This document shows, piece by piece, positions 21,462 to 59,420 of a DNA stretch of 64,000 nt (position 1 is the first letter of the stretch; each line of letters begins with the position of its first letter). Location: assembly GCA_039096225.1 (NCBI GenBank), contig JBBPEB010000004.1:868001-932000 (forward strand). Direction: 5' to 3'. A model generated the notes under the pieces. It did no database searches. It saw only the letters and a list, made by a program, of their open reading frames with translations, and was not told the origin of the DNA. This DNA is from Blastocystis sp. Blastoise (taxonomy: Eukaryota > Protista > Bigyra: Opalinata). The position numbers and the translations under genes were made by a program.

Positions 21462-37374
<15,913 letters not shown>

Positions 37375-40685: not shown

Positions 40686-41091
40686 TTCTTCATAAATAAA
40701 TGATATATGAAACAAAAGATTTATGATTGAAATATTTCTGCTGAAAAGAACAAAAGATATTGTAAAATATCTGTACATTTATATATATATTCCCATATTA
40801 TGTACCTGGAGGGCACCGACAATTTGTCGAAGAAAGCACTACGAGTTTTCTGAAAATCTTCTCATTTTTCCCTACAATAATCAAAAATTCCCGGAAGAAA
40901 AGATTTACATATCCCCAAGAATGTCCGTTAAAGACCCTAATATACAATACTTCCCATTTTCTCTTTCACTTTTTATTATAGCAAAAGGAGTTTAGGCAGT
41001 ATCTATTAGACAACTGACATCTCTTGGTATTTTACGCTAATGTTCTTGTTCGATTACCGATCACTATCACTATGGACATTTTTTCAGGTTT

Positions 41092-41300
41092 CTGTCAAAA
41101 GGTCCAACGACTTTTTTGTTTTGGTTTCCCCAGTGGTGAGCAGTGAAAATTTTTAAATATGTAGCTGACAAAAGGTTATTTGATTTTTCTGTTTGGTTTC
41201 CCCAGTGGTGGAGCAGTGAAAAAATTTTAAAGGGTAGCTGACAAAAGGTCCAACGACTTTTTTGCTTTGGTTTCCCCAGTGGTGAGCAGTGAAATTTTTT
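41092..41300 (+). repeat. CACTA subterminal direct repeats (also ~49668-49876)
   Basis: Three copies of TTTGGTTTCCCCAGTGGTG(G)AGCAGTGAAA, each preceded by (G)CTG(A/T)CAAAAGGT, with a period of ~74 bp. Confidence 0.85.
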
Positions 41301-41588
41301 GTCAGAGTTTCAGTGATTTTATAAAATCGAAAAGCAGTGCAAAAGTATGACGCACCTTAAAACAATAATTGGCGAATAAAAATGGTTTTAAATATTCTCT
41401 ATTTTTTCATTTATTGGTTTTTTTATTCTTTTTGTGGTGTAATAATAAACGATATAACAAAACAAACAAATTAAATATTATCAAATAATCATAAAAACAA
41501 ATAATAGAAAACAATAATAATAAATATATAAAAAAAAGATAATAAAACATATAATAAATAATATAATAAAATATATATAATATTTAAT

Positions 41589-42259
41589 TTATAATATTTC
41601 AACCAGGACAGTTTCAGTCTTTAATTTGCATTTAAGCCTAAGCAACCTATATAAAGAGATGATATTAATTAACTAGTACTATTAGTAATATATATAACAT
41701 TTTAAAATAATAATAAAATAAAAATATATACCTTTTATTGAAGCCATTACTAGAAAAAGCAAGGACCAAAGGCAAGGAACCATCCTATAAAAGATATATT
41801 AAATAGTATAAGTAATAAAAAGGAATATAATTAATATATATACATACCTTTGATAAGCCATTCTCTCCAATTAACAACAACGACAGCAACGGAACCCCCG
41901 GAAACCTATATAAAGATAGAGTAAGTTATATAATATAATAATATATAATAAAGTAAATTAATATAGAATAATAAAATATAAATATATACATTACTGCTAT
42001 ATAAATATAAAGTGGGGTTAGTTATATAATATGTAATAGATAATATAGATGATATATACCTTCTTTTAACATTGATTCCTTCCATTCTAGACCTAAAGAA
42101 CCCATCTATAAGAGAGCCACGACCACACAAAAGAAGGACCAGAACGTTTAAGGAGACCAGCAAGTGTCAAAACACCAAGCAGAGACAGCTACTATAGAAA
42201 AATGAATGAATAGAGTAGAAAAAATAAAATATAAAGAAACAGCAAACACCTACCATCAT
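41589..42259 (-). other. Spliced cargo unit inside CACTA copy A (5 exons), coding status ambiguous
   Basis: GC-richer exons bounded by AG/GT: ..42254, 42188-42060, 41905-41848, 41784-41732, 41646-.. They are separated by AT-rich introns with GTAGGT/GTATAT/GTATGT donors and TAG acceptors. Confidence 0.65.
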
Positions 42260-44099
42260 AATAGTATCATATATAATAAAATAAAAATAAAATTTAATAA
42301 TATATCATATTAATCATATAAGATATAATAAAATAAATATGTGATAAGTCATGTAGCATTTTGTTTTGTTATAAAAGGGTGTAATAGGAATTTAGAAGAT
42401 ATAGCTGAAATAATGAAAATAAACATGAATAATCTCATATCTACTAAATATAGAGAATCTTCATCATAAGAAAAATGAATGGTTAAGAATAAAAGAGAAA
42501 GAAAAATTTTATTTCTATGAGGAAAATGGATATTGTTATTGTTATTTTCAATTTATCATAATTATCATAAGTAATACAAAAATTGTTTTATTTTAAAGAA
42601 TTATATAGTTATTTATCATTATATCATTTTATAATCAGTTTTGACTATGGAAGAGTGATTTTTATCCTTAATTGTCAAAATTATTTTTAGTATCACTCAG
42701 TAAGTATAAGTCTTTTAAAAAATAAATATAGGTTACAATACAGACTTATAGAGAAGACTCTGAAACTTCTATTTCCAGAATAAAAGTCATTTATATAATC
42801 CAGAATGATTGCCTGAATCATTATTTAAAGAATCAGTTTTATCACATATCTTCAATAAAATTATAAAATAAAGAAAATGAAGATAAAAAGGTCTAGAGTC
42901 GAAAAATGTTATGAAATATTATCTTTTTAATGTATTTGTCCCGATTTTTTATTAATCTGTTATCATAATATGACAAAGAGAGTGGTAAAAACATTTTAAA
43001 AGTGAATTAAAGCAATAATTGGAATCAAGTTAAAGTCTTCTAATACCTTTAAATAGACTTGAAATACATAGAGTAAGCATTTTTTCATGCAAATAGTGTT
43101 TTTCATTTAAATAATATCAAAAACAAATCAAAATAGTATTTTATAATTACTCAGCAAGAACTTTTTCTAGTATTCAAGGACTTACTATTATCAAATATAC
43201 GTATAAACAAACAAAAATCATATTTTATATATTTTTAGTTGAATAGTCGGAGTCGTGTTGATAGTTTATTATAAAACAAATGCAAAAATCACTTTTTTGT
43301 CAAAAAAAGTCTTATATCGATATATAGTTTTATTCATAATTTATTTATTGTCTACAAACTCTGTGTATTCATTTTAAGTGATTTTTAGTAAAACTAAAAT
43401 TATTTGAAATACATATTCTAATTTCGAAAATGACAAAAACATATTATATTACATATTTAGTGTTTAAATGAAGTTTAAAAGTTATTAAAATATCAATTAG
43501 TTAAAAAATATAAAATATTGAGAATCTCCATTTTTATGACTTGTCTTAAATCACGTTAAAGGTGTATAATTGAATAGTTGCATTGATTATTTGTATGATT
43601 CTAGTAATATTTTCTAAGAATTTTGTTTTTTAACAAGAATAAATTCTTAATTTATTGTTTATCAACTTAAAAATGTATTTAAATGATTATTTTCTTGTGT
43701 AAAAGGGTATAGTGGTTATATGAAAAAAAAATTACGCAGAATCATTTGATAATATAATTTTGAAAAATGAGAATTATTATTTTGAACTAAACTAATTTTT
43801 CACATATACTCATTATAAAACGACTTGAATAATCTTTTGAGAAGATTATTTTGTTTTATAATACACTTAAGAAGTAATTGAATGTTATTGTGTCTCTTTT
43901 TGTTAAAAAGATTATTTTGAATGCTATTTTTGATTGATCTATATATTATCAATGCATTCAATGATGAAATAAATACATATGTAAAGAAAAAATAGTAATT
44001 GATCTAATTTATCTTCATCTATTTGAATAGATAATTTTTGAAAAAATTAATATAATATAATTATTGATACCTATATATAAAGAATTAGTTATGTAATTG

Positions 44100-44168
44100 A
44101 CCTTAAGACAGGAATTGAACCTGTTTTCTATCATAAACTGATAGATACTTACCAATATAAGCTTAAGG
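44100..44168 (-). ncRNA. tRNA-like cloverleaf (non-canonical; nominal anticodon TTT) in CACTA copy A
   Basis: Minus strand CCTTAAG-CT-TAT ATTGGTAA GTA-T-CTATC AGTTTAT GATAG-AAA-ACAGG TTCAATT CCTGT-CTTAAGG-T. Acceptor stem 7/7, anticodon stem 5/5, T stem 5/5, D-loop GG, B-box-like GGTTCAATTCC. Confidence 0.75.
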
Positions 44169-44199
44169 ATAATATAGAATAAAAATACATAAATGAAAG

Positions 44200-45911
44200 T
44201 AAAATAGTAGGAATAATGAGTCAGTATGATGTGTAAGGATATATTTATATATGTATAAGTGAAAAAGGATGCTAGAAGAAGGGAAAAGAAGTAAAAAAGA
44301 ATAAAAGAGAAAGAAATATAAAGTAAATGAGATAGGGTCTTTAATTATTGAGATTAATAAAAAAAATGAAAAATAATTTATAATAAATGACAAAGATAGA
44401 TATATAGAGATCTATAATAATAAGGAATGCAGAAGAGAAGAGGATTAGAGGATAAAGAATAAGAAGAAGATAAGGAAGATAAGGAAGAAGATAAGGAAGA
44501 TAAGGAAGAATAAGAAGAAGATAAGGAAGAAGATAAGGAAGATAAGGAAGAATAAGAAGAAGATAAGGAAGAATAAGAAGAAGAAAAGAAGAATAGGAAG
44601 AAGATAAGGAAGATAAGGAAGAAGAAGAAAAGAAGAATAGGAAGAAGATAAGGAAGAAGAAGAAGAATAGGAAGAAGAATAAGAAGATAAGGAAGAATAA
44701 GAAGAATAAGAAGATAAGGAAGATAAGGAAGAAGAAGAAGAAGATAAGGAAGAAGAAGAAAAGAAGAATAGGAAGAAGAAAAAGAAAAGAAGAATAGGAA
44801 GAAGATAAGGAAGAAGAAGAAGAATAGGAAGAAGAATAAGAAGATAAGGAAGATAAGGAAGAATAAGAAGAAGATAAGGAAGAAGAAGAAAAGAAGAATA
44901 GGAAGAAGATAAGGAAGAAGAAGAAGAATAGGAAGAAGAATAAGAAGATAAGGAAGATAAGGAAGAATAAGAAGAAGGAAATGAATAATGACAACAAGAA
45001 GATGAAGAATAAATAGAATAATGATAAGAAAGAATAAATAGATTAATAAGAGAACAAGAGGATGAATGTGAAGAAGAGACAAGGAAGGAGGTGAAAAAAA
45101 GAAAGAAAAGTAAGATAAAGAATAGGAAGAAGATATACAAGAAAATGAAGAAGAAGAGAAAGAAAAGAAAAGAAGAATAAACAAGAAACATATATAGAGA
45201 AACAGAAAGATATAAAGAAATAAAAGAGATAGATAGATAGATAGATAGATAGAGAGAAAAAAAAATACAAAGATATAAATAGATAGATACACTAATAGAT
45301 GAATAGAAAGAAAGAAGAAAAGAGAGACATAAAGAAGAAATTAGATAGAAAGAGATAGAATTCTATATAGAATGAGAGATATACAAAAGAAATCAAATGA
45401 AATAGAGAATAAGATAAAAATAGATACAAGAATAAAGATAAAAAGAGAAATAGAGGAGTAGGGAAGGTGTATAAAAAAGAAAGAATATAAAGATAGGTAG
45501 AGAGGAATTGAGAAGGATAGAGAAGGAGGAGGAAAACAGATAGAATTGGAAGACGAAGAAAAGAAGATGAGACGAAGAAGGGAGAAAAAAGGAGCAGGAA
45601 GTGAATATCAAGAAAGATAAATTTATATAGAAAAAAATTAGAAAGAAAAATACATACAAAGAAAACGATAGGGAATGATAGAGAGAATTATAATTTGAAT
45701 GACATAGAGAGAAGGAGAGACAAAGCAAGATAAAGAAGTATAATAGAAAAAACAAAGAAGAAAAAAAGAAGAATAAAAAAAGAAAAGATAGAACAATAGT
45801 ATATGAGAGAAGAAAGAGACAGAAAGAAAACGGGAAATAGGGTAGAGACATAGAAGGTAATAAAATATATAGAAGGGGAGAGGGGATTGAGATAAATAAA
45901 TAGATAGATAT

Positions 45912-45980
<69 letters not shown>

Positions 45981-48023
45981 GATAGAAGAATACCGAAAGA
46001 TATAGAGAAGGAGATAAATATTAATAAAAAGGAAAATATGGATAGAGAGGAGATAGAATCAAACAGAGAAGGAGAAGTAGATAAAAGTCGATTGAGGGAA
46101 GAGAGAAGTAGATTAAAATAAAAACAAATAGCAAGAGTTAAAAGGAAGAAGGGAAGAATATAGAATGATTTGAAGAATGAGATGTATATAGAAGTGAATA
46201 GAAGGAAATAGAGAAGGAGAAGTAGATAGAAAAGATTAAAAATAGAAGGAGATAGAAAGATAAGAGAATGATATAGATACAATAGAATGAGATAGAGAAG
46301 ATAAAGTAGATAGAAATGGATAGAAATAAGAAAAATAAATAGGATAAGAGAGAAAGAGAGATAAAAGGATATAAAAGGATATAGAAGGAGAGAAAACGGA
46401 TTGAGATGTAGTAAGATGGAAGGATGTAGATGGAAATAGAGAAGTAGATAGAAGATGATGGAGAATAAAGAGGAGATAGAAGAGGAGATAGAAGGAGAAA
46501 AAGAAGAAGAGGAAGTAAATTAAGTTAGAAGGAGATATAATAAGATAGAGAAGTAGATATACGTAGATATAAGGAAATATACGAAGATATAAGTAGATAA
46601 GAGAAAATAGAAGGAAATAGAGAATGAGATTGAGACACATAAATGAGGTAGAATGAGATAGATAAGGATAGAGAAATATGAAGAGAAATATAGGAATACA
46701 GAGAGATAGAATGATGTTGAAAGAGAAAGAAAAGGAAAGACTGAAGATTGAGACAGAAGGAGTAGCTGAGATAAAAGGAAGATAGAGAAGGAAATTGAAA
46801 GATGAAGGAAGAAGGAGAGAAGATGAAAGAAGAAGAATATAGAAGAAGATAGAGAATGAGATAATAGGGATAGAAAGAGAAAAATAGGAAAAAAGATGGT
46901 TAGAAGAAAATAGAAAAGGAGAAAGAAGGAGAGATAGAAGGAGAAATAGAAGGATATAAAAGAGATTAAGAAAGAAGTTAGAGACAAGAAGATATAGATA
47001 TATAGAAAGAAATAAAAGGATTAAATAGAAGATTAATAGGAAATAAATAGGAGACATATAGAAGATTAAGATAGAAGAAAAGAGACAAAATAGAAGTAGA
47101 TATAACAATATAGAGAATGAAAGGATAGAAATAAAAATAGAAAATAGATAACTAGAACATAAGAATATATAATAATAGAGAGAAGGAGAGAGAGAAGAAA
47201 AAGTAGATATAAAGTGGAAAAGGAGACATAGAAGGAAATATAAAAGGAAACAAGAAGGTAGAAAGAGACATATAAGATAAAATAGACAGGGACAGAGAGA
47301 AATAAATGGAAAAAGAATAAGGATAAAGATGGATACGAGAATAGAGAGGGAGAGAAGGAAGATTGAGATAGAATTATACAGAAAGAGGAGAGAAGGAAGA
47401 TAAAGAAGGAAAATAGGGCAGTAAAAAAAAGGGAATCAGAAGGAGGAGAGAAGAAGTATGAGAAGAATAGAAAGAAGGAAGAGGAGGAAGGCAAATAATA
47501 GAAGAGAACTATATATATAATAAATAGTGATATAAATATAAATAAGAAGATGAAGATCTGAAAAAAGCAAAGAATTATATGGAGAAGAAGAAGAAGAAGA
47601 AGAGGAAGAGGAAGAAAAGGAGGGTATACACTAATACATGTCGAGGAAAAAGAAGTATAGAATAAGGAGAAGAGGATAACAGGATAAAAGAAAAAGACAT
47701 AACGAAATACAATGTAAATAGAATAGTGATTAAGAAAGAGTAATGAAAGAGTGATATAAAAGGGAAGCGAAGATAAGAGAGAGGTATAATTAAAAAAAAG
47801 AAAAATAAAGGAATTTAGATAGAAGAAAAAATAAAAGAAAAATGAAGATCTGAGGAAGATAATGAATCAAAGGGAGAGACAAGGATATAGGCTGGAGACA
47901 AGGCATAGGAAGAAGTAATAAAGAAAGAAGATGAAGAAATAAGGAGATAAAAGTGTAGAAGGAAGAAAATGAAGAAGAGAGAAGAAGGAATCATTTTGTG
48001 TAAGAAGAAGAAATAAAGAAGAA
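44200..48023. repeat. ~3.8-kb purine-rich (+)/pyrimidine-rich (-) low-complexity tract, with a GAAGATAAG/GAAGAATAR minisatellite (~44450-44980) and (GATA)n (~45900-45980)
   Basis: The + strand is almost all A/G with sparse T and very few C. The overlapping minus-strand F/L/S 'ORFs' in several frames are a compositional artefact. Confidence 0.9.
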
Positions 48024-48517
48024 CTAGATAATAAATAAATAAATAAATAAATAAATAAACATACCTAATAGAAAAAAATGAATTTGGTGATGTTGAGTCA
48101 TAGGGAAAGATAACCAACAGAAACAGTAGAAAACAACCTAAATAAATAAATAATAATAAATAAAAATATAAAAATAATGAAAATAAATAATAAAATGAAT
48201 TAGATTCTAATTTAAGAAAAAACAAAAAGAAAGCTAATAATAGATAGAATGAATATACGATAAGTACTCTATTATATAATACTTAAAAATATAACAAAGA
48301 AAAAAATTAGAGATAATTATAAAAATAAATAAATACATATATACTTTGAAAGTAGTTTGACATCATAGACGTTGTTGACATGGACTGAAGAGGACTCTTA
48401 TAACCATGGACGAGCAGGAACCTATACATGCTAGAGAATGGGAGAATGTTAATATTGATAAAGAATAAAAAATAGTAATATACATACAAGAGAATAATCT
48501 GAAGTTAAAATCAACTT
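48023..48517 (-). other. Putative 5' spliced exons of a CACTA-internal transcript (copy A; copy B ~56595-57089)
   Basis: AG/GT-bounded blocks at 48517-48488, 48421-48345 and 48137-48065, then an acceptor opening an exon at 48023 that runs into the pyrimidine tract. Confidence 0.55.
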
Positions 48518-50164
48518 CTATTTTTTAAAATAACAGCTAATAAAAATAAAATAAAAATAAAGAAAATAAGTAACAAATGAAAATATTTTCTAAGTTAATA
48601 GGCTCAATAGCGTATGGGTGTATTCAGGTCTTAAAAGAAAAATCATTTTTGCGGGAATATCAAGAAACTCAAAAAAAGTATTTTTTCCCTCCTTTTTTCA
48701 CTGTCACTTTTCTTTAATATTTTTGACTTTTTAGTATTAAAAACGATTCTTACAGGCATGTATAGAGACTCTATACCACTTTTGAGACTAAAAATCAAAT
48801 ATTTAAAAATGAGTGAAAATCTTGACTAGCAAGAAAAACAATTATGTGAAGCTGAGTATGTTGTGTATACACATATCTAACAACAGAGATGATAAAAACA
48901 CACAACTCCTCTTGGTTTAGGACATAATTATGAATTCTCTCAAAAAAGCTATTTTAAACCTTAAAACGATACCCTGAACTATAAATCAAGTCCTGAATGA
49001 TATTCTAAAGTCATATTTTTAAAAACAGGTTTAATGACGATAATCAATAAACAAAAACAAGAGCTTCCGTTTTACTTTTCTTTTTTGAATTTTTAATTGT
49101 TTTGACTTTCTAGGGTAGTTGGCTGAAAGAAATGTTGTCGTCTTTAGGCTAAAAAATGATGAATAAAAAAGTCAAGTCATTTTATTGTTTTTTCCTTGGG
49201 AAATAAAAAAGAAGAAATTTTTAGGTGTGTTTTGGTTTAGGCTGTATAATGGTTTTTATTGTAAAAGGACTTGACGAGAATGATTGAAATGATAATACAT
49301 CACTCAGAGAACACACAACTTTAAAAAATTTGTCACTCATGTAATCCATTCCTGAATTATAGACTTCAGAGAAAAAATTAAAGTCTTTTTGGTTTTAAAC
49401 AGTCATTTTAAATCATAAAACACTGTAAAATAGTCAATATTTAGAATGTCTATGATTATATAAATAAACAATATATTTTGTAGAGTTATTTTTAAGTTTT
49501 TCTCGTCAAAAAGAGAGAAACTTGACAAGTTGGCGGACACTCTTTTCTCGAGTTTAGGCCAACGTATTTTTGATTAAAAAATCCCAGTCATTTTGTTGTT
49601 TCTCTTACGGGAAATAGGGTCAAAAAAACACAAAATGTCCATAGTGTATGGACATTTTTTCAGGTTTCTGTCAAAAGGTCCAACGACTTTTTTGTTTTGG
49701 TTTCCCCAGTGGTGAGCAGTGAAAATTTTTAAATATGTAGCTGACAAAAGGTTATTTGATTTTTCTGTTTGGTTTCCCCAGTGGTGGAGCAGTGAAAAAA
49801 TTTTAAAGGGTAGCTGACAAAAGGTCCAACGACTTTTTTGCTTTGGTTTCCCCAGTGGTGAGCAGTGAAATTTTTTGTCAGAGTTTCAGTGATTTTATAA
49901 AATCGAAAAGCAGTGCAAAAGTATGACGCACCTTAAAACAATAATTGGCGAATAAAAATGGTTTTAAATATTCTCTATTTTTTCATTTATTGGTTTTTTT
50001 ATTCTTTTTGTGGTGTAATAATAAACGATATAACAAAACAAACAAATTAAATATTATCAAATAATCATAAAAACAAATAATAGAAAACAATAATAATAAA
50101 TATATAAAAAAAAGATAATAAAACATATAATAAATAATATAATAAAATATATATAATATTTAAT

Positions 50165-50835
50165 TTATAATATTTCAACCAGGACAGTTTCAGTCTTTAA
50201 TTTGCATTTAAGCCTAAGCAACCTATATAAAGAGATGATATTAATTAACTAGTACTATTAGTAATATATATAACATTTTAAAATAATAATAAAATAAAAA
50301 TATATACCTTTTATTGAAGCCATTACTAGAAAAAGCAAGGACCAAAGGCAAGGAACCATCCTATAAAAGATATATTAAATAGTATAAGTAATAAAAAGGA
50401 ATATAATTAATATATATACATACCTTTGATAAGCCATTCTCTCCAATTAACAACAACGACAGCAACGGAACCCCCGGAAACCTATATAAAGATAGAGTAA
50501 GTTATATAATATAATAATATATAATAAAGTAAATTAATATAGAATAATAAAATATAAATATATACATTACTGCTATATAAATATAAAGTGGGGTTAGTTA
50601 TATAATATGTAATAGATAATATAGATGATATATACCTTCTTTTAACATTGATTCCTTCCATTCTAGACCTAAAGAACCCATCTATAAGAGAGCCACGACC
50701 ACACAAAAGAAGGACCAGAACGTTTAAGGAGACCAGCAAGTGTCAAAACACCAAGCAGAGACAGCTACAATAGAAAATTGAATGAATAGAGTAGAAAAAA
50801 TAAAATATAAAGAAACAGCAAACACCTACCATCAT
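50165..50835 (-). other. Spliced cargo unit inside CACTA copy B
   Basis: Same exon structure as 41589-42259 (offset 8,576). Confidence 0.65.
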
Positions 50836-52675
50836 AATAGTATCATATATAATAAAATAAAAATAAAATTTAATAATATATCATATTAATCATATAAGAT
50901 ATAATAAAATAAATATGTGATAAGTCATGTAGCATTTTGTTTTGTTATAAAAGGGTGTAATAGGAATTTAGAAGATATAGCTGAAATAATGAAAATAAAC
51001 ATGAATAATCTCATATCTACTAAATATAGAGAATCTTCATCATAAGAAAAATGAATGGTTAAGAATAAAAGAGAAAGAAAAATTTTATTTCTATGAGGAA
51101 AATGGATATTGTTATTGTTATTTTCAATTTATCATAATTATCATAAGTAATACAAAAATTGTTTTATTTTAAAGAATTATATAGTTATTTATCATTATAT
51201 CATTTTATAATCAGTTTTGACTATGGAAGAGTGATTTTTATCCTTAATTGTCAAAATTATTTTTAGTATCACTCAGTAAGTATAAGTCTTTTAAAAAATA
51301 AATATAGGTTACAATACAGACTTATAGAGAAGACTCTGAAACTTCTATTTCCAGAATAAAAGTCATTTATATAATCCAGAATGATTGCCTGAATCATTAT
51401 TTAAAGAATCAGTTTTATCACATATCTTCAATAAAATTATAAAATAAAGAAAATGAAGATAAAAAGGTCTAGAGTCGAAAAATGTTATGAAATATTATCT
51501 TTTTAATGTATTTGTCCCGATTTTTTATTAATCTGTTATCATAATATGACAAAGAGAGTGGTAAAAACATTTTAAAAGTGAATTAAAGCAATAATTGGAA
51601 TCAAGTTAAAGTCTTCTAATACCTTTAAATAGACTTGAAATACATAGAGTAAGCATTTTTTCATGCAAATAGTGTTTTTCATTTAAATAATATCAAAAAC
51701 AAATCAAAATAGTATTTTATAATTACTCAGCAAGAACTTTTTCTAGTATTCAAGGACTTACTATTATCAAATATACGTATAAACAAACAAAAATCATATT
51801 TTATATATTTTTAGTTGAATAGTCGGAGTCGTGTTGATAGTTTATTATAAAACAAATGCAAAAATCACTTTTTTGTCAAAAAAAGTCTTATATCGATATA
51901 TAGTTTTATTCATAATTTATTTATTGTCTACAAACTCTGTGTATTCATTTTAAGTGATTTTTAGTAAAACTAAAATTATTTGAAATACATATTCTAATTT
52001 CGAAAATGACAAAAACATATTATATTACATATTTAGTGTTTAAATGAAGTTTAAAAGTTATTAAAATATCAATTAGTTAAAAAATATAAAATATTGAGAA
52101 TCTCCATTTTTATGACTTGTCTTAAATCACGTTAAAGGTGTATAATTGAATAGTTGCATTGATTATTTGTATGATTCTAGTAATATTTTCTAAGAATTTT
52201 GTTTTTTAACAAGAATAAATTCTTAATTTATTGTTTATCAACTTAAAAATGTATTTAAATGATTATTTTCTTGTGTAAAAGGGTATAGTGGTTATATGAA
52301 AAAAAAATTACGCAGAATCATTTGATAATATAATTTTGAAAAATGAGAATTATTATTTTGAACTAAACTAATTTTTCACATATACTCATTATAAAACGAC
52401 TTGAATAATCTTTTGAGAAGATTATTTTGTTTTATAATACACTTAAGAAGTAATTGAATGTTATTGTGTCTCTTTTTGTTAAAAAGATTATTTTGAATGC
52501 TATTTTTGATTGATCTATATATTATCAATGCATTCAATGATGAAATAAATACATATGTAAAGAAAAAATAGTAATTGATCTAATTTATCTTCATCTATTT
52601 GAATAGATAATTTTTGAAAAAATTAATATAATATAATTATTGATACCTATATATAAAGAATTAGTTATGTAATTG

Positions 52676-52744
52676 ACCTTAAGACAGGAATTGAACCTGT
52701 TTTCTATCATAAACTGATAGATACTTACCAATATAAGCTTAAGG
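52676..52744 (-). ncRNA. tRNA-like cloverleaf in CACTA copy B
   Basis: Identical to 44100-44168. Confidence 0.75.
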
Positions 52745-52775
52745 ATAATATAGAATAAAAATACATAAATGAAAG

Positions 52776-54486
52776 TAAAATAGTAGGAATAATGAGTCAG
52801 TATGATGTGTAAGGATATATTTATATATGTATAAGTGAAAAAGGATGCTAGAAGAAGGGAAAAGAAGTAAAAAAGAATAAAAGAGAAAGAAATATAAAGT
52901 AAATGAGATAGGGTCTTTAATTATTGAGATTAATAAAAAAAATGAAAAATAATTTATAATAAATGACAAAGATAGATATATAGAGATCTATAATAATAAG
53001 GAATGCAGAAGAGAAGAGGATTAGAGGATAAAGAATAAGAAGAAGATAAGGAAGATAAGGAAGAAGATAAGGAAGATAAGGAAGAATAAGAAGAAGATAA
53101 GGAAGAAGATAAGGAAGATAAGGAAGAATAAGAAGAAGATAAGGAAGAATAAGAAGAAGAAAAGAAGAATAGGAAGAAGATAAGGAAGATAAGGAAGAAG
53201 AAGAAAAGAAGAATAGGAAGAAGATAAGGAAGAAGAAGAAGAATAGGAAGAAGAATAAGAAGATAAGGAAGAATAAGAAGAATAAGAAGATAAGGAAGAT
53301 AAGGAAGAAGAAGAAGAAGATAAGGAAGAAGAAGAAAAGAAGAATAGGAAGAAGAAAAAGAAAAGAAGAATAGGAAGAAGATAAGGAAGAAGAAGAAGAA
53401 TAGGAAGAAGAATAAGAAGATAAGGAAGATAAGGAAGAATAAGAAGAAGATAAGGAAGAAGAAGAAAAGAAGAATAGGAAGAAGATAAGGAAGAAGAAGA
53501 AGAATAGGAAGAAGAATAAGAAGATAAGGAAGATAAGGAAGAATAAGAAGAAGGAAATGAATAATGACAACAAGAAGATGAAGAATAAATAGAATAATGA
53601 TAAGAAAGAATAAATAGATTAATAAGAGAACAAGAGGATGAATGTGAAGAAGAGACAAGGAAGGAGGTGAAAAAAAGAAAGAAAAGTAAGATAAAGAATA
53701 GGAAGAAGATATACAAGAAAATGAAGAAGAAGAGAAAGAAAAGAAAAGAAGAATAAACAAGAAACATATATAGAGAAACAGAAAGATATAAAGAAATAAA
53801 AGAGATAGATAGATAGATAGATAGATAGAGAGAAAAAAAATACAAAGATATAAATAGATAGATACACTAATAGATGAATAGAAAGAAAGAAGAAAAGAGA
53901 GACATAAAGAAGAAATTAGATAGAAAGAGATAGAATTCTATATAGAATGAGAGATATACAAAAGAAATCAAATGAAATAGAGAATAAGATAAAAATAGAT
54001 ACAAGAATAAAGATAAAAAGAGAAATAGAGGAGTAGGGAAGGTGTATAAAAAAGAAAGAATATAAAGATAGGTAGAGAGGAATTGAGAAGGATAGAGAAG
54101 GAGGAGGAAAACAGATAGAATTGGAAGACGAAGAAAAGAAGATGAGACGAAGAAGGGAGAAAAAAGGAGCAGGAAGTGAATATCAAGAAAGATAAATTTA
54201 TATAGAAAAAAATTAGAAAGAAAAATACATACAAAGAAAACGATAGGGAATGATAGAGAGAATTATAATTTGAATGACATAGAGAGAAGGAGAGACAAAG
54301 CAAGATAAAGAAGTATAATAGAAAAAACAAAGAAGAAAAAAAGAAGAATAAAAAAAGAAAAGATAGAACAATAGTATATGAGAGAAGAAAGAGACAGAAA
54401 GAAAACGGGAAATAGGGTAGAGACATAGAAGGTAATAAAATATATAGAAGGGGAGAGGGGATTGAGATAAATAAATAGATAGATAT

Positions 54487-54555
<69 letters not shown>

Positions 54556-56595
54556 GATAGAAGAATACCGAAAGATATAGAGAAGGAGATAAATATTAAT
54601 AAAAAGGAAAATATGGATAGAGAGGAGATAGAATCAAACAGAGAAGGAGAAGTAGATAAAAGTCGATTGAGGGAAGAGAGAAGTAGATTAAAATAAAAAC
54701 AAATAGCAAGAGTTAAAAGGAAGAAGGGAAGAATATAGAATGATTTGAAGAATGAGATGTATATAGAAGTGAATAGAAGGAAATAGAGAAGGAGAAGTAG
54801 ATAGAAAAGATTAAAAATAGAAGGAGATAGAAAGATAAGAGAATGATATAGATACAATAGAATGAGATAGAGAAGATAAAGTAGATAGAAATGGATAGAA
54901 ATAAGAAAAATAAATAGGATAAGAGAGAAAGAGAGATAAAAGGATATAAAAGGATATAGAAGGAGAGAAAACGGATTGAGATGTAGTAAGATGGAAGGAT
55001 GTAGATGGAAATAGAGAAGTAGATAGAAGATGATGGAGAATAAAGAGGAGATAGAAGAGGAGATAGAAGGAGAAAAAGAAGAAGAGGAAGTAAATTAAGT
55101 TAGAAGGAGATATAATAAGATAGAGAAGTAGATATACGTAGATATAAGGAAATATACGAAGATATAAGTAGATAAGAGAAAATAGAAGGAAATAGAGAAT
55201 GAGATTGAGACACATAAATGAGGTAGAATGAGATAGATAAGGATAGAGAAATATGAAGAGAAATATAGGAATACAGAGAGATAGAATGATGTTGAAAGAG
55301 AAAGAAAAGGAAAGACTGAAGATTGAGACAGAAGGAGTAGCTGAGATAAAAGGAAGATAGAGAAGGAAATTGAAAGATGAAGGAAGAAGGAGAGAAGATG
55401 AAAGAAGAAGAATATAGAAGAAGATAGAGAATGAGATAATAGGGATAGAAAGAGAAAAATAGGAAAAAAGATGGTTAGAAGAAAATAGAAAAGGAGAAAG
55501 AAGGAGAGATAGAAGGAGAAATAGAAGGATATAAAAGAGATTAAGAAAGAAGTTAGAGACAAGAAGATATAGATATATAGAAAGAAATAAAAGGATTAAA
55601 TAGAAGATTAATAGGAAATAAATAGGAGACATATAGAAGATTAAGATAGAAGAAAAGAGACAAAATAGAAGTAGATATAACAATATAGAGAATGAAAGGA
55701 TAGAAATAAAAATAGAAAATAGATAACTAGAACATAAGAATATATAATAATAGAGAGAAGGAGAGAGAGAAGAAAAAGTAGATATAAAGTGGAAAAGGAG
55801 ACATAGAAGGAAATATAAAAGGAAACAAGAAGGTAGAAAGAGACATATAAGATAAAATAGACAGGGACAGAGAGAAATAAATGGAAAAAGAATAAGGATA
55901 AAGATGGATACGAGAATAGAGAGGGAGAGAAGGAAGATTGAGATAGAATTATACAGAAAGAGGAGAGAAGGAAGATAAAGAAGGAAAATAGGGCAGTAAA
56001 AAAAAGGGAATCAGAAGGAGGAGAGAAGAAGTATGAGAAGAATAGAAAGAAGGAAGAGGAGGAAGGCAAATAATAGAAGAGAACTATATATATAATAAAT
56101 AGTGATATAAATATAAATAAGAAGATGAAGATCTGAAAAAAGCAAAGAATTATATGGAGAAGAAGAAGAAGAAGAGGAAGAGGAAGAAAAGGAGGGTATA
56201 CACTAATACATGTCGAGGAAAAAGAAGTATAGAATAAGGAGAAGAGGATAACAGGATAAAAGAAAAAGACATAACGAAATACAATGTAAATAGAATAGTG
56301 ATTAAGAAAGAGTAATGAAAGAGTGATATAAAAGGGAAGCGAAGATAAGAGAGAGGTATAATTAAAAAAAAGAAAAATAAAGGAATTTAGATAGAAGAAA
56401 AAATAAAAGAAAAATGAAGATCTGAGGAAGATAATGAATCAAAGGGAGAGACAAGGATATAGGCTGGAGACAAGGCATAGGAAGAAGTAATAAAGAAAGA
56501 AGATGAAGAAATAAGGAGATAAAAGTGTAGAAGGAAGAAAATGAAGAAGAGAGAAGAAGGAATCATTTTGTGTAAGAAGAAGAAATAAAGAAGAA
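52776..56595. repeat. Purine-rich low-complexity tract in CACTA copy B
   Basis: Near-identical to 44200-48023, with small repeat-length differences. Confidence 0.9.
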
Positions 56596-59420
56596 CTAGA
56601 TAATAAATAAATAAATAAATAAATAAATAAACATACCTAATAGAAAAAAATGAATTTGGTGATGTTGAGTCATAGGGAAAGATAACCAACAGAAACAGTA
56701 GAAAACAACCTAAATAAATAAATAATAATAAATAAAAATATAAAAATAATGAAAATAAATAATAAAATGAATTAGATTCTAATTTAAGAAAAAACAAAAA
56801 GAAAGCTAATAATAGATAGAATGAATATACGATAAGTACTCTATTATATAATACTTAAAAATATAACAAAGAAAAAAATTAGAGATAATTATAAAAATAA
56901 ATAAATACATATATACTTTGAAAGTAGTTTGACATCATAGACGTTGTTGACATGGACTGAAGAGGACTCTTATAACCATGGACGAGCAGGAACCTATACA
57001 TGCTAGAGAATGGGAGAATGTTAATATTGATAAAGAATAAAAAATAGTAATATACATACAAGAGAATAATCTGAAGTTAAAATCAACTTCTATTTTTTAA
57101 AATAACAGCTAATAAAAATAAAATAAAAATAAAGAAAATAAGTAACAAATGAAAATATTTTCTAAGTTAATAGGCTCAATAGCGTATGGGTGTATTCAGG
57201 TCTTAAAAGAAAAATCATTTTTGCGGGAATATCAAGAAACTCAAAAAAAGTATTTTTTCCCTCCTTTTTTCACTGTCACTTTTCTTTAATATTTTTGACT
57301 TTTTAGTATTAAAAACGATTCTTACAGGCATGTATAGAGACTCTATACCACTTTTGAGACTAAAAATCAAATATTTAAAAATGAGTGAAAAATCTTGACT
57401 AGCAAGAAAAACAATTATGTGAAGCTGAGTATGTTGTGTATACACATATCTAACAACAGAGATGATAAAAACACACAACTCCTCTTGGTTTAGGACATAA
57501 TTATGAATTCTCTCAAAAAAGCTATTTTAAACCTTAAAACGATACCCTGAACTATAAATCAAGTCCTGAATGATATTCTAAAGTCATATTTTTAAAAACA
57601 GGTTTAATGACGATAATCAATAAACAAAAACAAGAGCTTCCGTTTTACTTTTCTTTTTTGAATTTTTAATTGTTTTGACTTTCTAGGGTAGTTGGCTGAA
57701 AGAAATGTTGTCGTCTTTAGGCTAAAAAATGATGAATAAAAAAGTCAAGTCATTTTATTGTTTTTTCCTTGGGAAATAAAAAAGAAGAAATTTTTAGGTG
57801 TGTTTTGGTTTAGGCTGTATAATGGTTTTTATTGTAAAAGGACTTGACGAGAATGATTGAAATGATAATACATCACTCAGAGAACACACAACTTTAAAAA
57901 ATTTGTCACTCATGTAATCCATTCCTGAATTATAGACTTCAGAGAAAAAATTAAAGTCTTTTTGGTTTTAAACAGTCATTTTAAATCATAAAACACTGTA
58001 AAATAGTCAATATTTAGAATGTCTATGATTATATAAATAAACAATATATTTTGTAGAGTTATTTTTAAGTTTTTCTCGTCAAAAAGAGAGAAACTTGACA
58101 AGTTGGCGGACACTCTTTTCTCGAGTTTAGGCCAACGTATTTTTGATTAAAAAATCCCAGTCATTTTGTTGTTTCTCTTACGGGAAATAGGGTCAAAAAA
58201 ACACAAAATGTCCATAGTGGATTGAACTCTTTCTAAACACTTGGGTTATAGTGTTTATCTTTGTATAAAATAGATTGCTGTTTACTTCATATATTCAGTT
58301 TTCTCTCTGGAATTCTAGATTTAAAAAGATATCTTTTAATCATCTGATTAATACTGTCAATAAGTAAATATTACTGTATACAAATAGTTAAGATTTTCAT
58401 GATACTAGTGATTGTTCAAATATGATTGCTATTAGTTTTCAGAAAAAAAAACTGACAAAACCAAAGAAAAATATTAAATAAATGATACTACGAATTTTGC
58501 AATAAATAAAAACAATAGTATAGAAATAACTTTAAAAATGATATCGACACATATAGAATATTTTAACTAATACAAAAGAAAATATATGTACAACTGGTTA
58601 ATTAGTAAAAAAAAAGTAATTATATAACAAATAAAGAAAATGAAATGAGATATATCGCTATAATGGAATGAAAATGAAGAAATCATATAAAAGAGAAAGA
58701 ATAATATATAATGAAAAAATATATAATCTTTATATAGTATAGAAAAGTAAAAGAATCTAATTGAATGAAATCAAAAAGAAATCTAGACCATATAGATATA
58801 AAAATATAAATTATTAATATATATATATCTATAGGTGATATTCACAATTCAGAAATATATATATATATTAAAAATAAGGAACTATAGATTACAAAAATAT
58901 ATGAATTATTTAGTGTGTATAATAATACACATGAATCAGAAGAATAATATATATAGAACATAAGAGAAAGGGTACAAGAAGAGGTTTGAAATAAAAGAAA
59001 ATAGATATTTATTGAGCTTAAAAATTAGGAAAAAAAAATAAAAAGAAAAGCATCATATAAATAATAAAATGAAATTATATTTTTGGAAAAGAAATAGTGA
59101 TATATATACTATAAAAAGTGTTCATTAAAAAATATAAGCAAATATAATGAATTTAAATAAGAGATATAAACATATACATAGAAAGAAAGAAATTACTTAA
59201 AAAGTAACAAACAAGAATATATATATATATAAATGAATAATAGAAAATGGTACAATAAATAATGAAAAATAATAAAGAAACTACAGAAACATATTCTAAG
59301 AGATTCTATGTATGTATATATATACAATATATAATGAATAATGAATAGATAATATTTCCCTTTATATGAATATTCATATCATATTAAAAGCAACAATTGA
59401 TATATATATAATAGTATGCA

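Follow-up and report, generated by a model that had tools for sequence, protein, structure and literature searches.

Non-autonomous CACTA/En-Spm (CMC) transposons, such as maize dSpm/I and Pack-CACTA-like elements, have CACTA...TAGTG ends, short terminal inverted repeats (TIRs), 3-bp target site duplications (TSDs) and subterminal direct repeats. They lack a transposase of their own and have only their termini in common with an autonomous element encoding a Transposase_21 (TnpD-type) protein. The double-Ds structure of maize, an inverted nesting within the element body, and the linked reinsertion of Ac and En/Spm are precedents for movement of an element into or close to a related copy. Self-insertions of P-element constructs were reported to be frequent (3/39 mapped events; PMC4744444), and tandem dimers of the P element, hobo, R1 and bacterial insertion sequences form when one target is hit a second time, and such dimers can give rise to arrays (PMC5932611; McGurk and Barbash, 2018). 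The locus described here lies in the stramenopile gut protist Blastocystis sp. Blastoise, isolated from a tortoise, in a 64,000-nucleotide stretch of contig JBBPEB010000004.1 (the window; G000:C13:868001-932000 in an assembly of 33.3 Mb and 34 contigs). An apparent 8.6-kb tandem duplication within the window consisted of two copies of a non-autonomous CACTA element, one nested in the left TIR of the other. No paper describing CACTA elements in Blastocystis was found in the literature searched, and the Blastocystis genome paper gives total transposon content only (PMC10690189).

Three junctions defined the structure. At the left, host sequence ccGAT was followed by CAC, TAT and then a complete left end, CACTATGGAC. 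In the middle, the right end GTCCATAGTG was followed by TAT and GGACATT. At the right, a second GTCCATAGTG was followed by GAT and host sequence tgaac (Table 1). A preliminary description had read these junctions, and the outer GAT and inner TAT TSDs, from the letters of the window, and all were confirmed to the base. The junction sequences also bore out its placement of the inner copy in bases 4-6 of the outer left TIR, in the same orientation and with two independent TSDs. The dimer is thus a second insertion with a 3-bp TSD in the left TIR of a resident copy, and it mimics an 8.6-kb tandem duplication.

Table 1. Positions in the window of the parts of the CACTA dimer
Feature	Position	Strand	Basis
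Outer copy, left TSD (GAT)	41059..41061	.	GAT directly at both outermost ends
Outer copy, left TIR bases 1-3 (CAC), split off by the inner copy	41062..41064	+	Junction sequence
Left TAT, bases 4-6 of the outer TIR, duplicated as target of the inner copy	41065..41067	.	TAT on both sides of the inner copy
Inner copy, complete 8,579-bp non-autonomous CACTA element	41068..49646	+	TIRs, repeats, alignment, no credible open reading frame
Inner copy, 15-bp perfect TIRs	41068-41082 and 49632-49646		Sequence comparison
Right TAT of the inner-copy TSD, also bases 4-6 of the outer copy	49647..49649	.	Junction sequence
Outer copy, rest of the element (base 7 onward), right end intact	49650..58219	+	Collinear with the inner copy
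Outer copy, right TSD (GAT)	58220..58222	.	Junction sequence

A single-copy locus would read GAT-CACTATGGAC...CCATAGTG-GAT, and a simple tandem duplication of it would take the form prefix + U + U + suffix, U being the repeated unit. The observed junctions cannot be written in this form, with CACTAT extra at the left and CAC missing at the internal left end, and a simple tandem duplication therefore cannot yield them. The argument against unequal crossover made in the preliminary description holds accordingly. One insertion of a whole, end-to-end element with the 3-bp TSD normal for the family explains the junctions. The mirror parse, with insertion into the right TIR, was rejected; it predicts ...GTCCATA directly followed by CACTATGG..., which was not seen. 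A non-autonomous CACTA (EnSpm/CMC-type) element thus entered the GAT site first, and a near-identical copy in the same orientation later entered the TAT at bases 4-6 of its left TIR, generating the 3-bp TSD. The transposase would have been supplied in trans, presumably by an element at C23:362896-378401. Overall, a nested CACTA insertion with transposase in trans and a probable local origin is the best explanation of the locus, with a probability of about 80%.

The outer copy (CAC, TAT and 49650-58219) was 8,576 bp long and was 99.9% identical to the inner copy over 8.57 kb (BLAST, MAFFT). Two substitutions (42193 T/A and 42202 A/T, inner/outer) and three indels separated the copies; the indels were A-run lengths at 45257 and 48815 and one AGA unit at 47583-85. 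Alignment thus matched the few differences listed earlier. The earlier claim of very recent activity was also supported. The family is active now or was so until very recently. The Blastoise assembly was made from Oxford Nanopore Technologies (ONT) R9 reads with Flye --meta, racon, PolyPolish and POLCA (PMC10690189), so homopolymer differences between the copies may be sequencing errors.

The TIR of the element was a perfect 15 bp, CACTATGGACATTTT, present at both ends of both copies with CACTA...TAGTG-type termini. A subterminal repeat (2.8 copies of a 73-bp unit at 41092-41294) was seen at the left end only, and its core 16-mer occurred three times per copy against 0.01 expected. Together with mostly 3-bp TSDs and a partner element encoding Transposase_21, these features agree with the CACTA-type identity first assigned to the element. 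No credible open reading frame was present on either strand of the element, and the genome profile search gave no Transposase_21 match in the window. In the inner copy, the core at about 44.3-48.0 kb was some 4 kb of purine-rich, low-complexity DNA with a GC skew of about +0.8. Departures from the maize dSpm/I type were the host, a protist and not a plant, the 8.6-kb non-coding interior with this 4-kb purine-rich core, the 2-bp TSDs that made up a quarter of the family total, and an autonomous partner in which no TnpA-like second protein was identified.

The cores of both copies (44300-48000 and 52900-56600, + strand) were GA-rich, with 9-, 21- and 30-bp periodicities and an (AGAT)23 tract, and were >99% conserved among copies despite being non-coding. 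Long minus-strand 'open reading frames' of the element were rejected as genes, being pyrimidine-tract artefacts. A ciliate or other alternative genetic code for the stop-rich core was likewise rejected, since long host reading frames (e.g., 21465-36773, - strand) are open in the standard code.

A whole-genome pattern search for the family's ends matched 32 on the left and 31 on the right, corresponding to about 32 copies and all with the identical, perfect TIR; a reversed control pattern gave zero matches across the genome. The CAC-less left end at C13:917647 (window 49647) was unique, and all other left ends (31/31) read CAC+TATGGAC. The copies fell into two length classes, ~8.55-8.58 kb and ~8.83 kb; for ten members of the 8.83-kb class the analysis covered just the ends. 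Across 30 insertions with reconstructed flanks the TSD was 3 bp in 22/30 and 2 bp in 8/30. The 2-bp TSDs were relatively commoner in the 8.83-kb class (5/11) than in the 8.55-kb class (3/17), a difference that suggests a variable cut stagger. Insertion sites were AT-rich like the genome, and no target-sequence motif was found in 22 reconstructed empty sites. With no such motif and with TSDs of the usual lengths, TAT and GAT are typical duplications, and the idea of a target motif that would make the TIR a preferred site was rejected.

Several family members or candidate members had unusual structures. The copy at C22:28677-33114 was reduced to 4.4 kb by internal deletion but kept both ends, with the TSD GCA. 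At C24:351410-373427, a family member (TSD ATA) was interrupted, at the point matching window ~48640, by a 13.25-kb element with terminal inverted repeats of >40 bp starting AGAGATAATTGACTCAGGACGC. This 22-kb 'copy' was rejected as a second self-nesting because the interrupter is an unrelated element with long terminal repeats. The copy at C8:1173474 ended ...CCATAGTA where others end ...CCATAGTG, and two readings fit: the terminal G has changed to A and the TSD is TA (2 bp), or the terminal base has been lost and the TSD is ATA (3 bp). Contig C11 (105,680 bp) stopped in the final bases of a divergent 8.9-kb member (C11:96734-105680; ~93% identity in aligned positions, 83% by BLAST), and its end is an assembly break at the family repeat. 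A solo CACTATGGACATT at C29:1251281 was rejected as a family member, as it had no further similarity and ~0.6 chance matches are expected by our estimate.

The preliminary description had called for a search for a trans-acting Transposase_21 source, and one was found. A profile search of the genome with Transposase_21 (PF02992) returned four loci, one of which (C23:375036-375410) lay inside a 15,506-bp element at C23:362896-378401. This element carried the same 15-bp TIR at both ends and the TSD CAT, and its similarity to the window element was confined to 512 bp at the left (86%) and 163 bp at the right (90%). Such a pattern is typical of an autonomous/non-autonomous relation, with the C23 element as the single autonomous member. 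A 744-amino acid (aa) open frame within it had the Transposase_21 match and, downstream, a weak DUF4218 match, in the expected order. A word-based protein search matched this frame to the NCBI entry 'hypothetical protein WA158_005897 [Blastocystis sp. Blastoise]' (917 aa) and also returned a 53% identical protein from a second CACTA family of the Blastoise genome. No Pfam match to the TnpA-like Transposase_24 was seen in the remaining open frames of this element, spliced gene models not having been built. A non-autonomous copy of the 8.83-kb class (C23:353998-362833, TSD ATA) lay 62 bp upstream of the autonomous element in the same orientation, and the two make up the second end-to-end pair of the family.

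A further 285-aa open frame of the C23 element (1287-2141, + strand, of the extracted piece) matched DDE_Tnp_1_7 (E 2.5e-5; 24.2 bits, cut-off 22.4). This piggyBac-type frame may be a captured or nested piggyBac fragment.

The relationships of the copies bear on the source of the inner one. Seventeen copies of the 8.55-kb class were complete or nearly so, and among them the inner copy, the outer copy, C15:262972 and C5:664627 formed a clade whose members were 1-7 substitutions apart and ~30 substitutions from a 13-member main clade. A donor drawn at random from the family would fall in the four-member clade in ~10% of cases and would lie within two substitutions of the outer copy in ~6%. These low odds favor a local donor, which could be the outer copy itself, as present on the sister chromatid or homologue, or its twin on C15. 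Local or self reinsertion, with the outer copy or another member of the very young four-copy clade as donor, is accordingly the source toward which the evidence leans, if only somewhat. Copy-specific variants assign no donor, as only two substitutions separate the inner and outer copies and one may be a polishing artefact.

Placement of the copies was also uneven. Altogether, the family TIRs make up <1 kb of 33 Mb. Two family pairs lay within 100 bp of an existing end against 0.006 expected under uniform insertion (Poisson P ~2e-5); when any nesting or abutment was counted, P was 0.027. Within 110 kb there were seven family pairs against 3.3 expected (P = 0.03). Placement by pure chance is unlikely, and a mild bias to reinsertion at or near family ends is plausible. 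Taken together, the placement excess and the four-member sub-lineage indicate local or sister-copy reinsertion.

A stronger proposal, that self-targeting is a 'safe haven' mode building head-to-tail arrays, was made in the preliminary description and did not survive the census. The tail-to-head junction was a single case among 32 left ends genome-wide, in ~32 copies. No array of more than two units was present in the assembly, although a collapsed longer array is possible. The expected relic of a collapsed dimer, CACTAT before another left end, occurred nowhere in the genome. The same description held that a junction unique among many insertions would count against self-targeting and leave the nesting intact; since the junction is unique, self-targeting as a mode fails and the nesting stands. 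It is a speculative and rather doubtful idea that the CACTA transposase, or its end complex, might steer insertions to family tips, giving self-nested dimers far above chance and possible array seeds.

The nesting itself could be real and yet owe nothing to any self bias, an unlinked copy having arrived by chance or an open-promoter spot having been hit twice, 6 bp apart. A mere 3 bp separate the TAT target from GAT, a spacing reminiscent of dimers made by double insertion at preferred sites (PMC5932611), the inner copy has at 42193 the allele common among other copies, and the junction is unique in the genome. This account is possible but on balance unlikely: there is no target motif for the TIR to match, and a hit in any family TIR under uniform insertion has a probability of ~5e-4 by our estimate from the copy census. 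Nor does any other repeat family abut the site, which has ordinary host flanks, and both copies belong to a sub-lineage of 4 of the 32 (P ~0.06-0.1 for a random donor). Formally, the data fit equally well a dimer built elsewhere and then moved as a 17-kb unit by its outermost CAC...GTG ends, as the composite starts with CACTA, ends with TAGTG and has GAT on both sides. Such a move is very improbable, however, given that the outermost left end offers only 6 bp of the 15-bp TIR before the register shifts and that neither a second dimer nor a CACTAT-prefixed donor relic exists elsewhere in the genome.

Two further explanations dispense with a second insertion. A single copy might have been doubled by the long-read assembler, or reads from an excised circle threaded in; the ONT R9, Flye --meta, polished assembly and units of 8.6 kb with 99.9% identity, several of whose differences are homopolymer lengths, are the setting in which this could happen. 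A mis-traversed repeat loop would nevertheless repeat one junction rather than create two non-canonical ones summing to a clean 3-bp TSD, and the dimer is embedded in a large contig, away from its ends, which leaves an artefact highly improbable. Unequal crossover, replication slippage or template switching in gap repair would also give head-to-tail, near-identical units. Since two events would be needed, a 6-bp CACTAT duplication and a join of the element's final base to base 4, and a single insertion of an intact element accounts for both, duplication without transposition is the least probable explanation of all.

Several points weigh against nested insertion with a local donor and the C23 transposase. 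At 42193 the majority and ancestral base, T, is found in the inner copy, against A in the outer copy and in the two copies closest to it; this misfits a simple sister-copy origin unless back mutation, gene conversion or a repeat-polishing artefact intervened. The placement figures presuppose uniform insertion, an unlikely condition where genes are dense, and are indicative only, and the preference for family ends rests on two end-proximal pairs, one of them the nested one. The Transposase_21 match of the C23 frame is marginal, scoring 30.8 bits when the genome was searched and 27.7-28.1 by hmmscan, against a cut-off of 28.6. Finally, a single ONT/Flye assembly (PMC10690189) underlies both the junctions and the tandem copy number, which is two or, in the event of collapse, higher.

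The dimer occupied the interior of a large contig, away from the contig ends, in a window of 22% GC with zero N. The GAT site was in intergenic host DNA, ~150-300 bp upstream of a minus-strand gene. The left flank belonged to a small host gene family, with its final ~170 bp unique, and the right flank matched low-complexity DNA only; no other repeat family was found abutting the site. Neither ARAGORN (zero tRNA genes) nor Rfam at gathering thresholds (zero known RNAs) gave a hit near the site or in the element. Metagenome scans with an empty-site 30-mer and with the 27-nt left end were both blank, in searches that may leave out records of the Blastoise genome. Elsewhere in the window, a giant host reading frame of ~5,100 codons (21465-36773, - strand; 1,580 + 3,522 aa) was separated into two parts by one stop or a short intron. 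Runs of AAT/ATT (Asn) throughout this frame dominated the repeat-finder output.

The split of the outer left end after base 6 has consequences for mobility, and that end is probably no longer a substrate. Intact end pairs were present in the inner copy alone and in a 17.15-kb unit (41068-58219) bounded by the left end of the inner copy and the right end of the outer one, and, judged from their termini, both could still move. The two direct 8.6-kb repeats could also serve as a substrate for unequal exchange, expansion or collapse, although neither outcome was seen in the assembly.

Compared with described systems, the Blastocystis dimer is a nested self-insertion and a close variant of the double-insertion dimer. 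Like the double-insertion dimers (PMC5932611), it has two complete head-to-tail copies and is a potential seed for an array via unequal exchange. Those dimers have the host TSD in the junction, whereas the Blastocystis junction, GTG-TAT-GGAC, holds an element TAT from a hit 3 bp inside; moreover, the outer left end here is split and no expansion past two copies is seen in the assembly. As in P-element self-insertion (PMC4744444) and the maize cases, which often involve the very end of the element, a cut-and-paste element appears to have reinserted in or next to its own copy. The P-construct, Ds, Ac and En/Spm cases were shown genetically, whereas a local donor is here suggested by placement and relatedness.

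Overall, only one such event is seen, and P, hobo and Ds offer known parallels, so its general importance is modest. It is a base-resolved example of a cut-and-paste transposon building its own tandem dimer, and it carries a warning for annotation, as the '8.6-kb tandem duplication' represents two transposition events and not a segmental duplication. Its value lies in naming a likely transposase source and in providing a concrete locus for local or self reinsertion and early array formation. If insertion is steered to family tips, the gene-dense genome of this protist would have preserved an early stage in the conversion of a transposon into a satellite.

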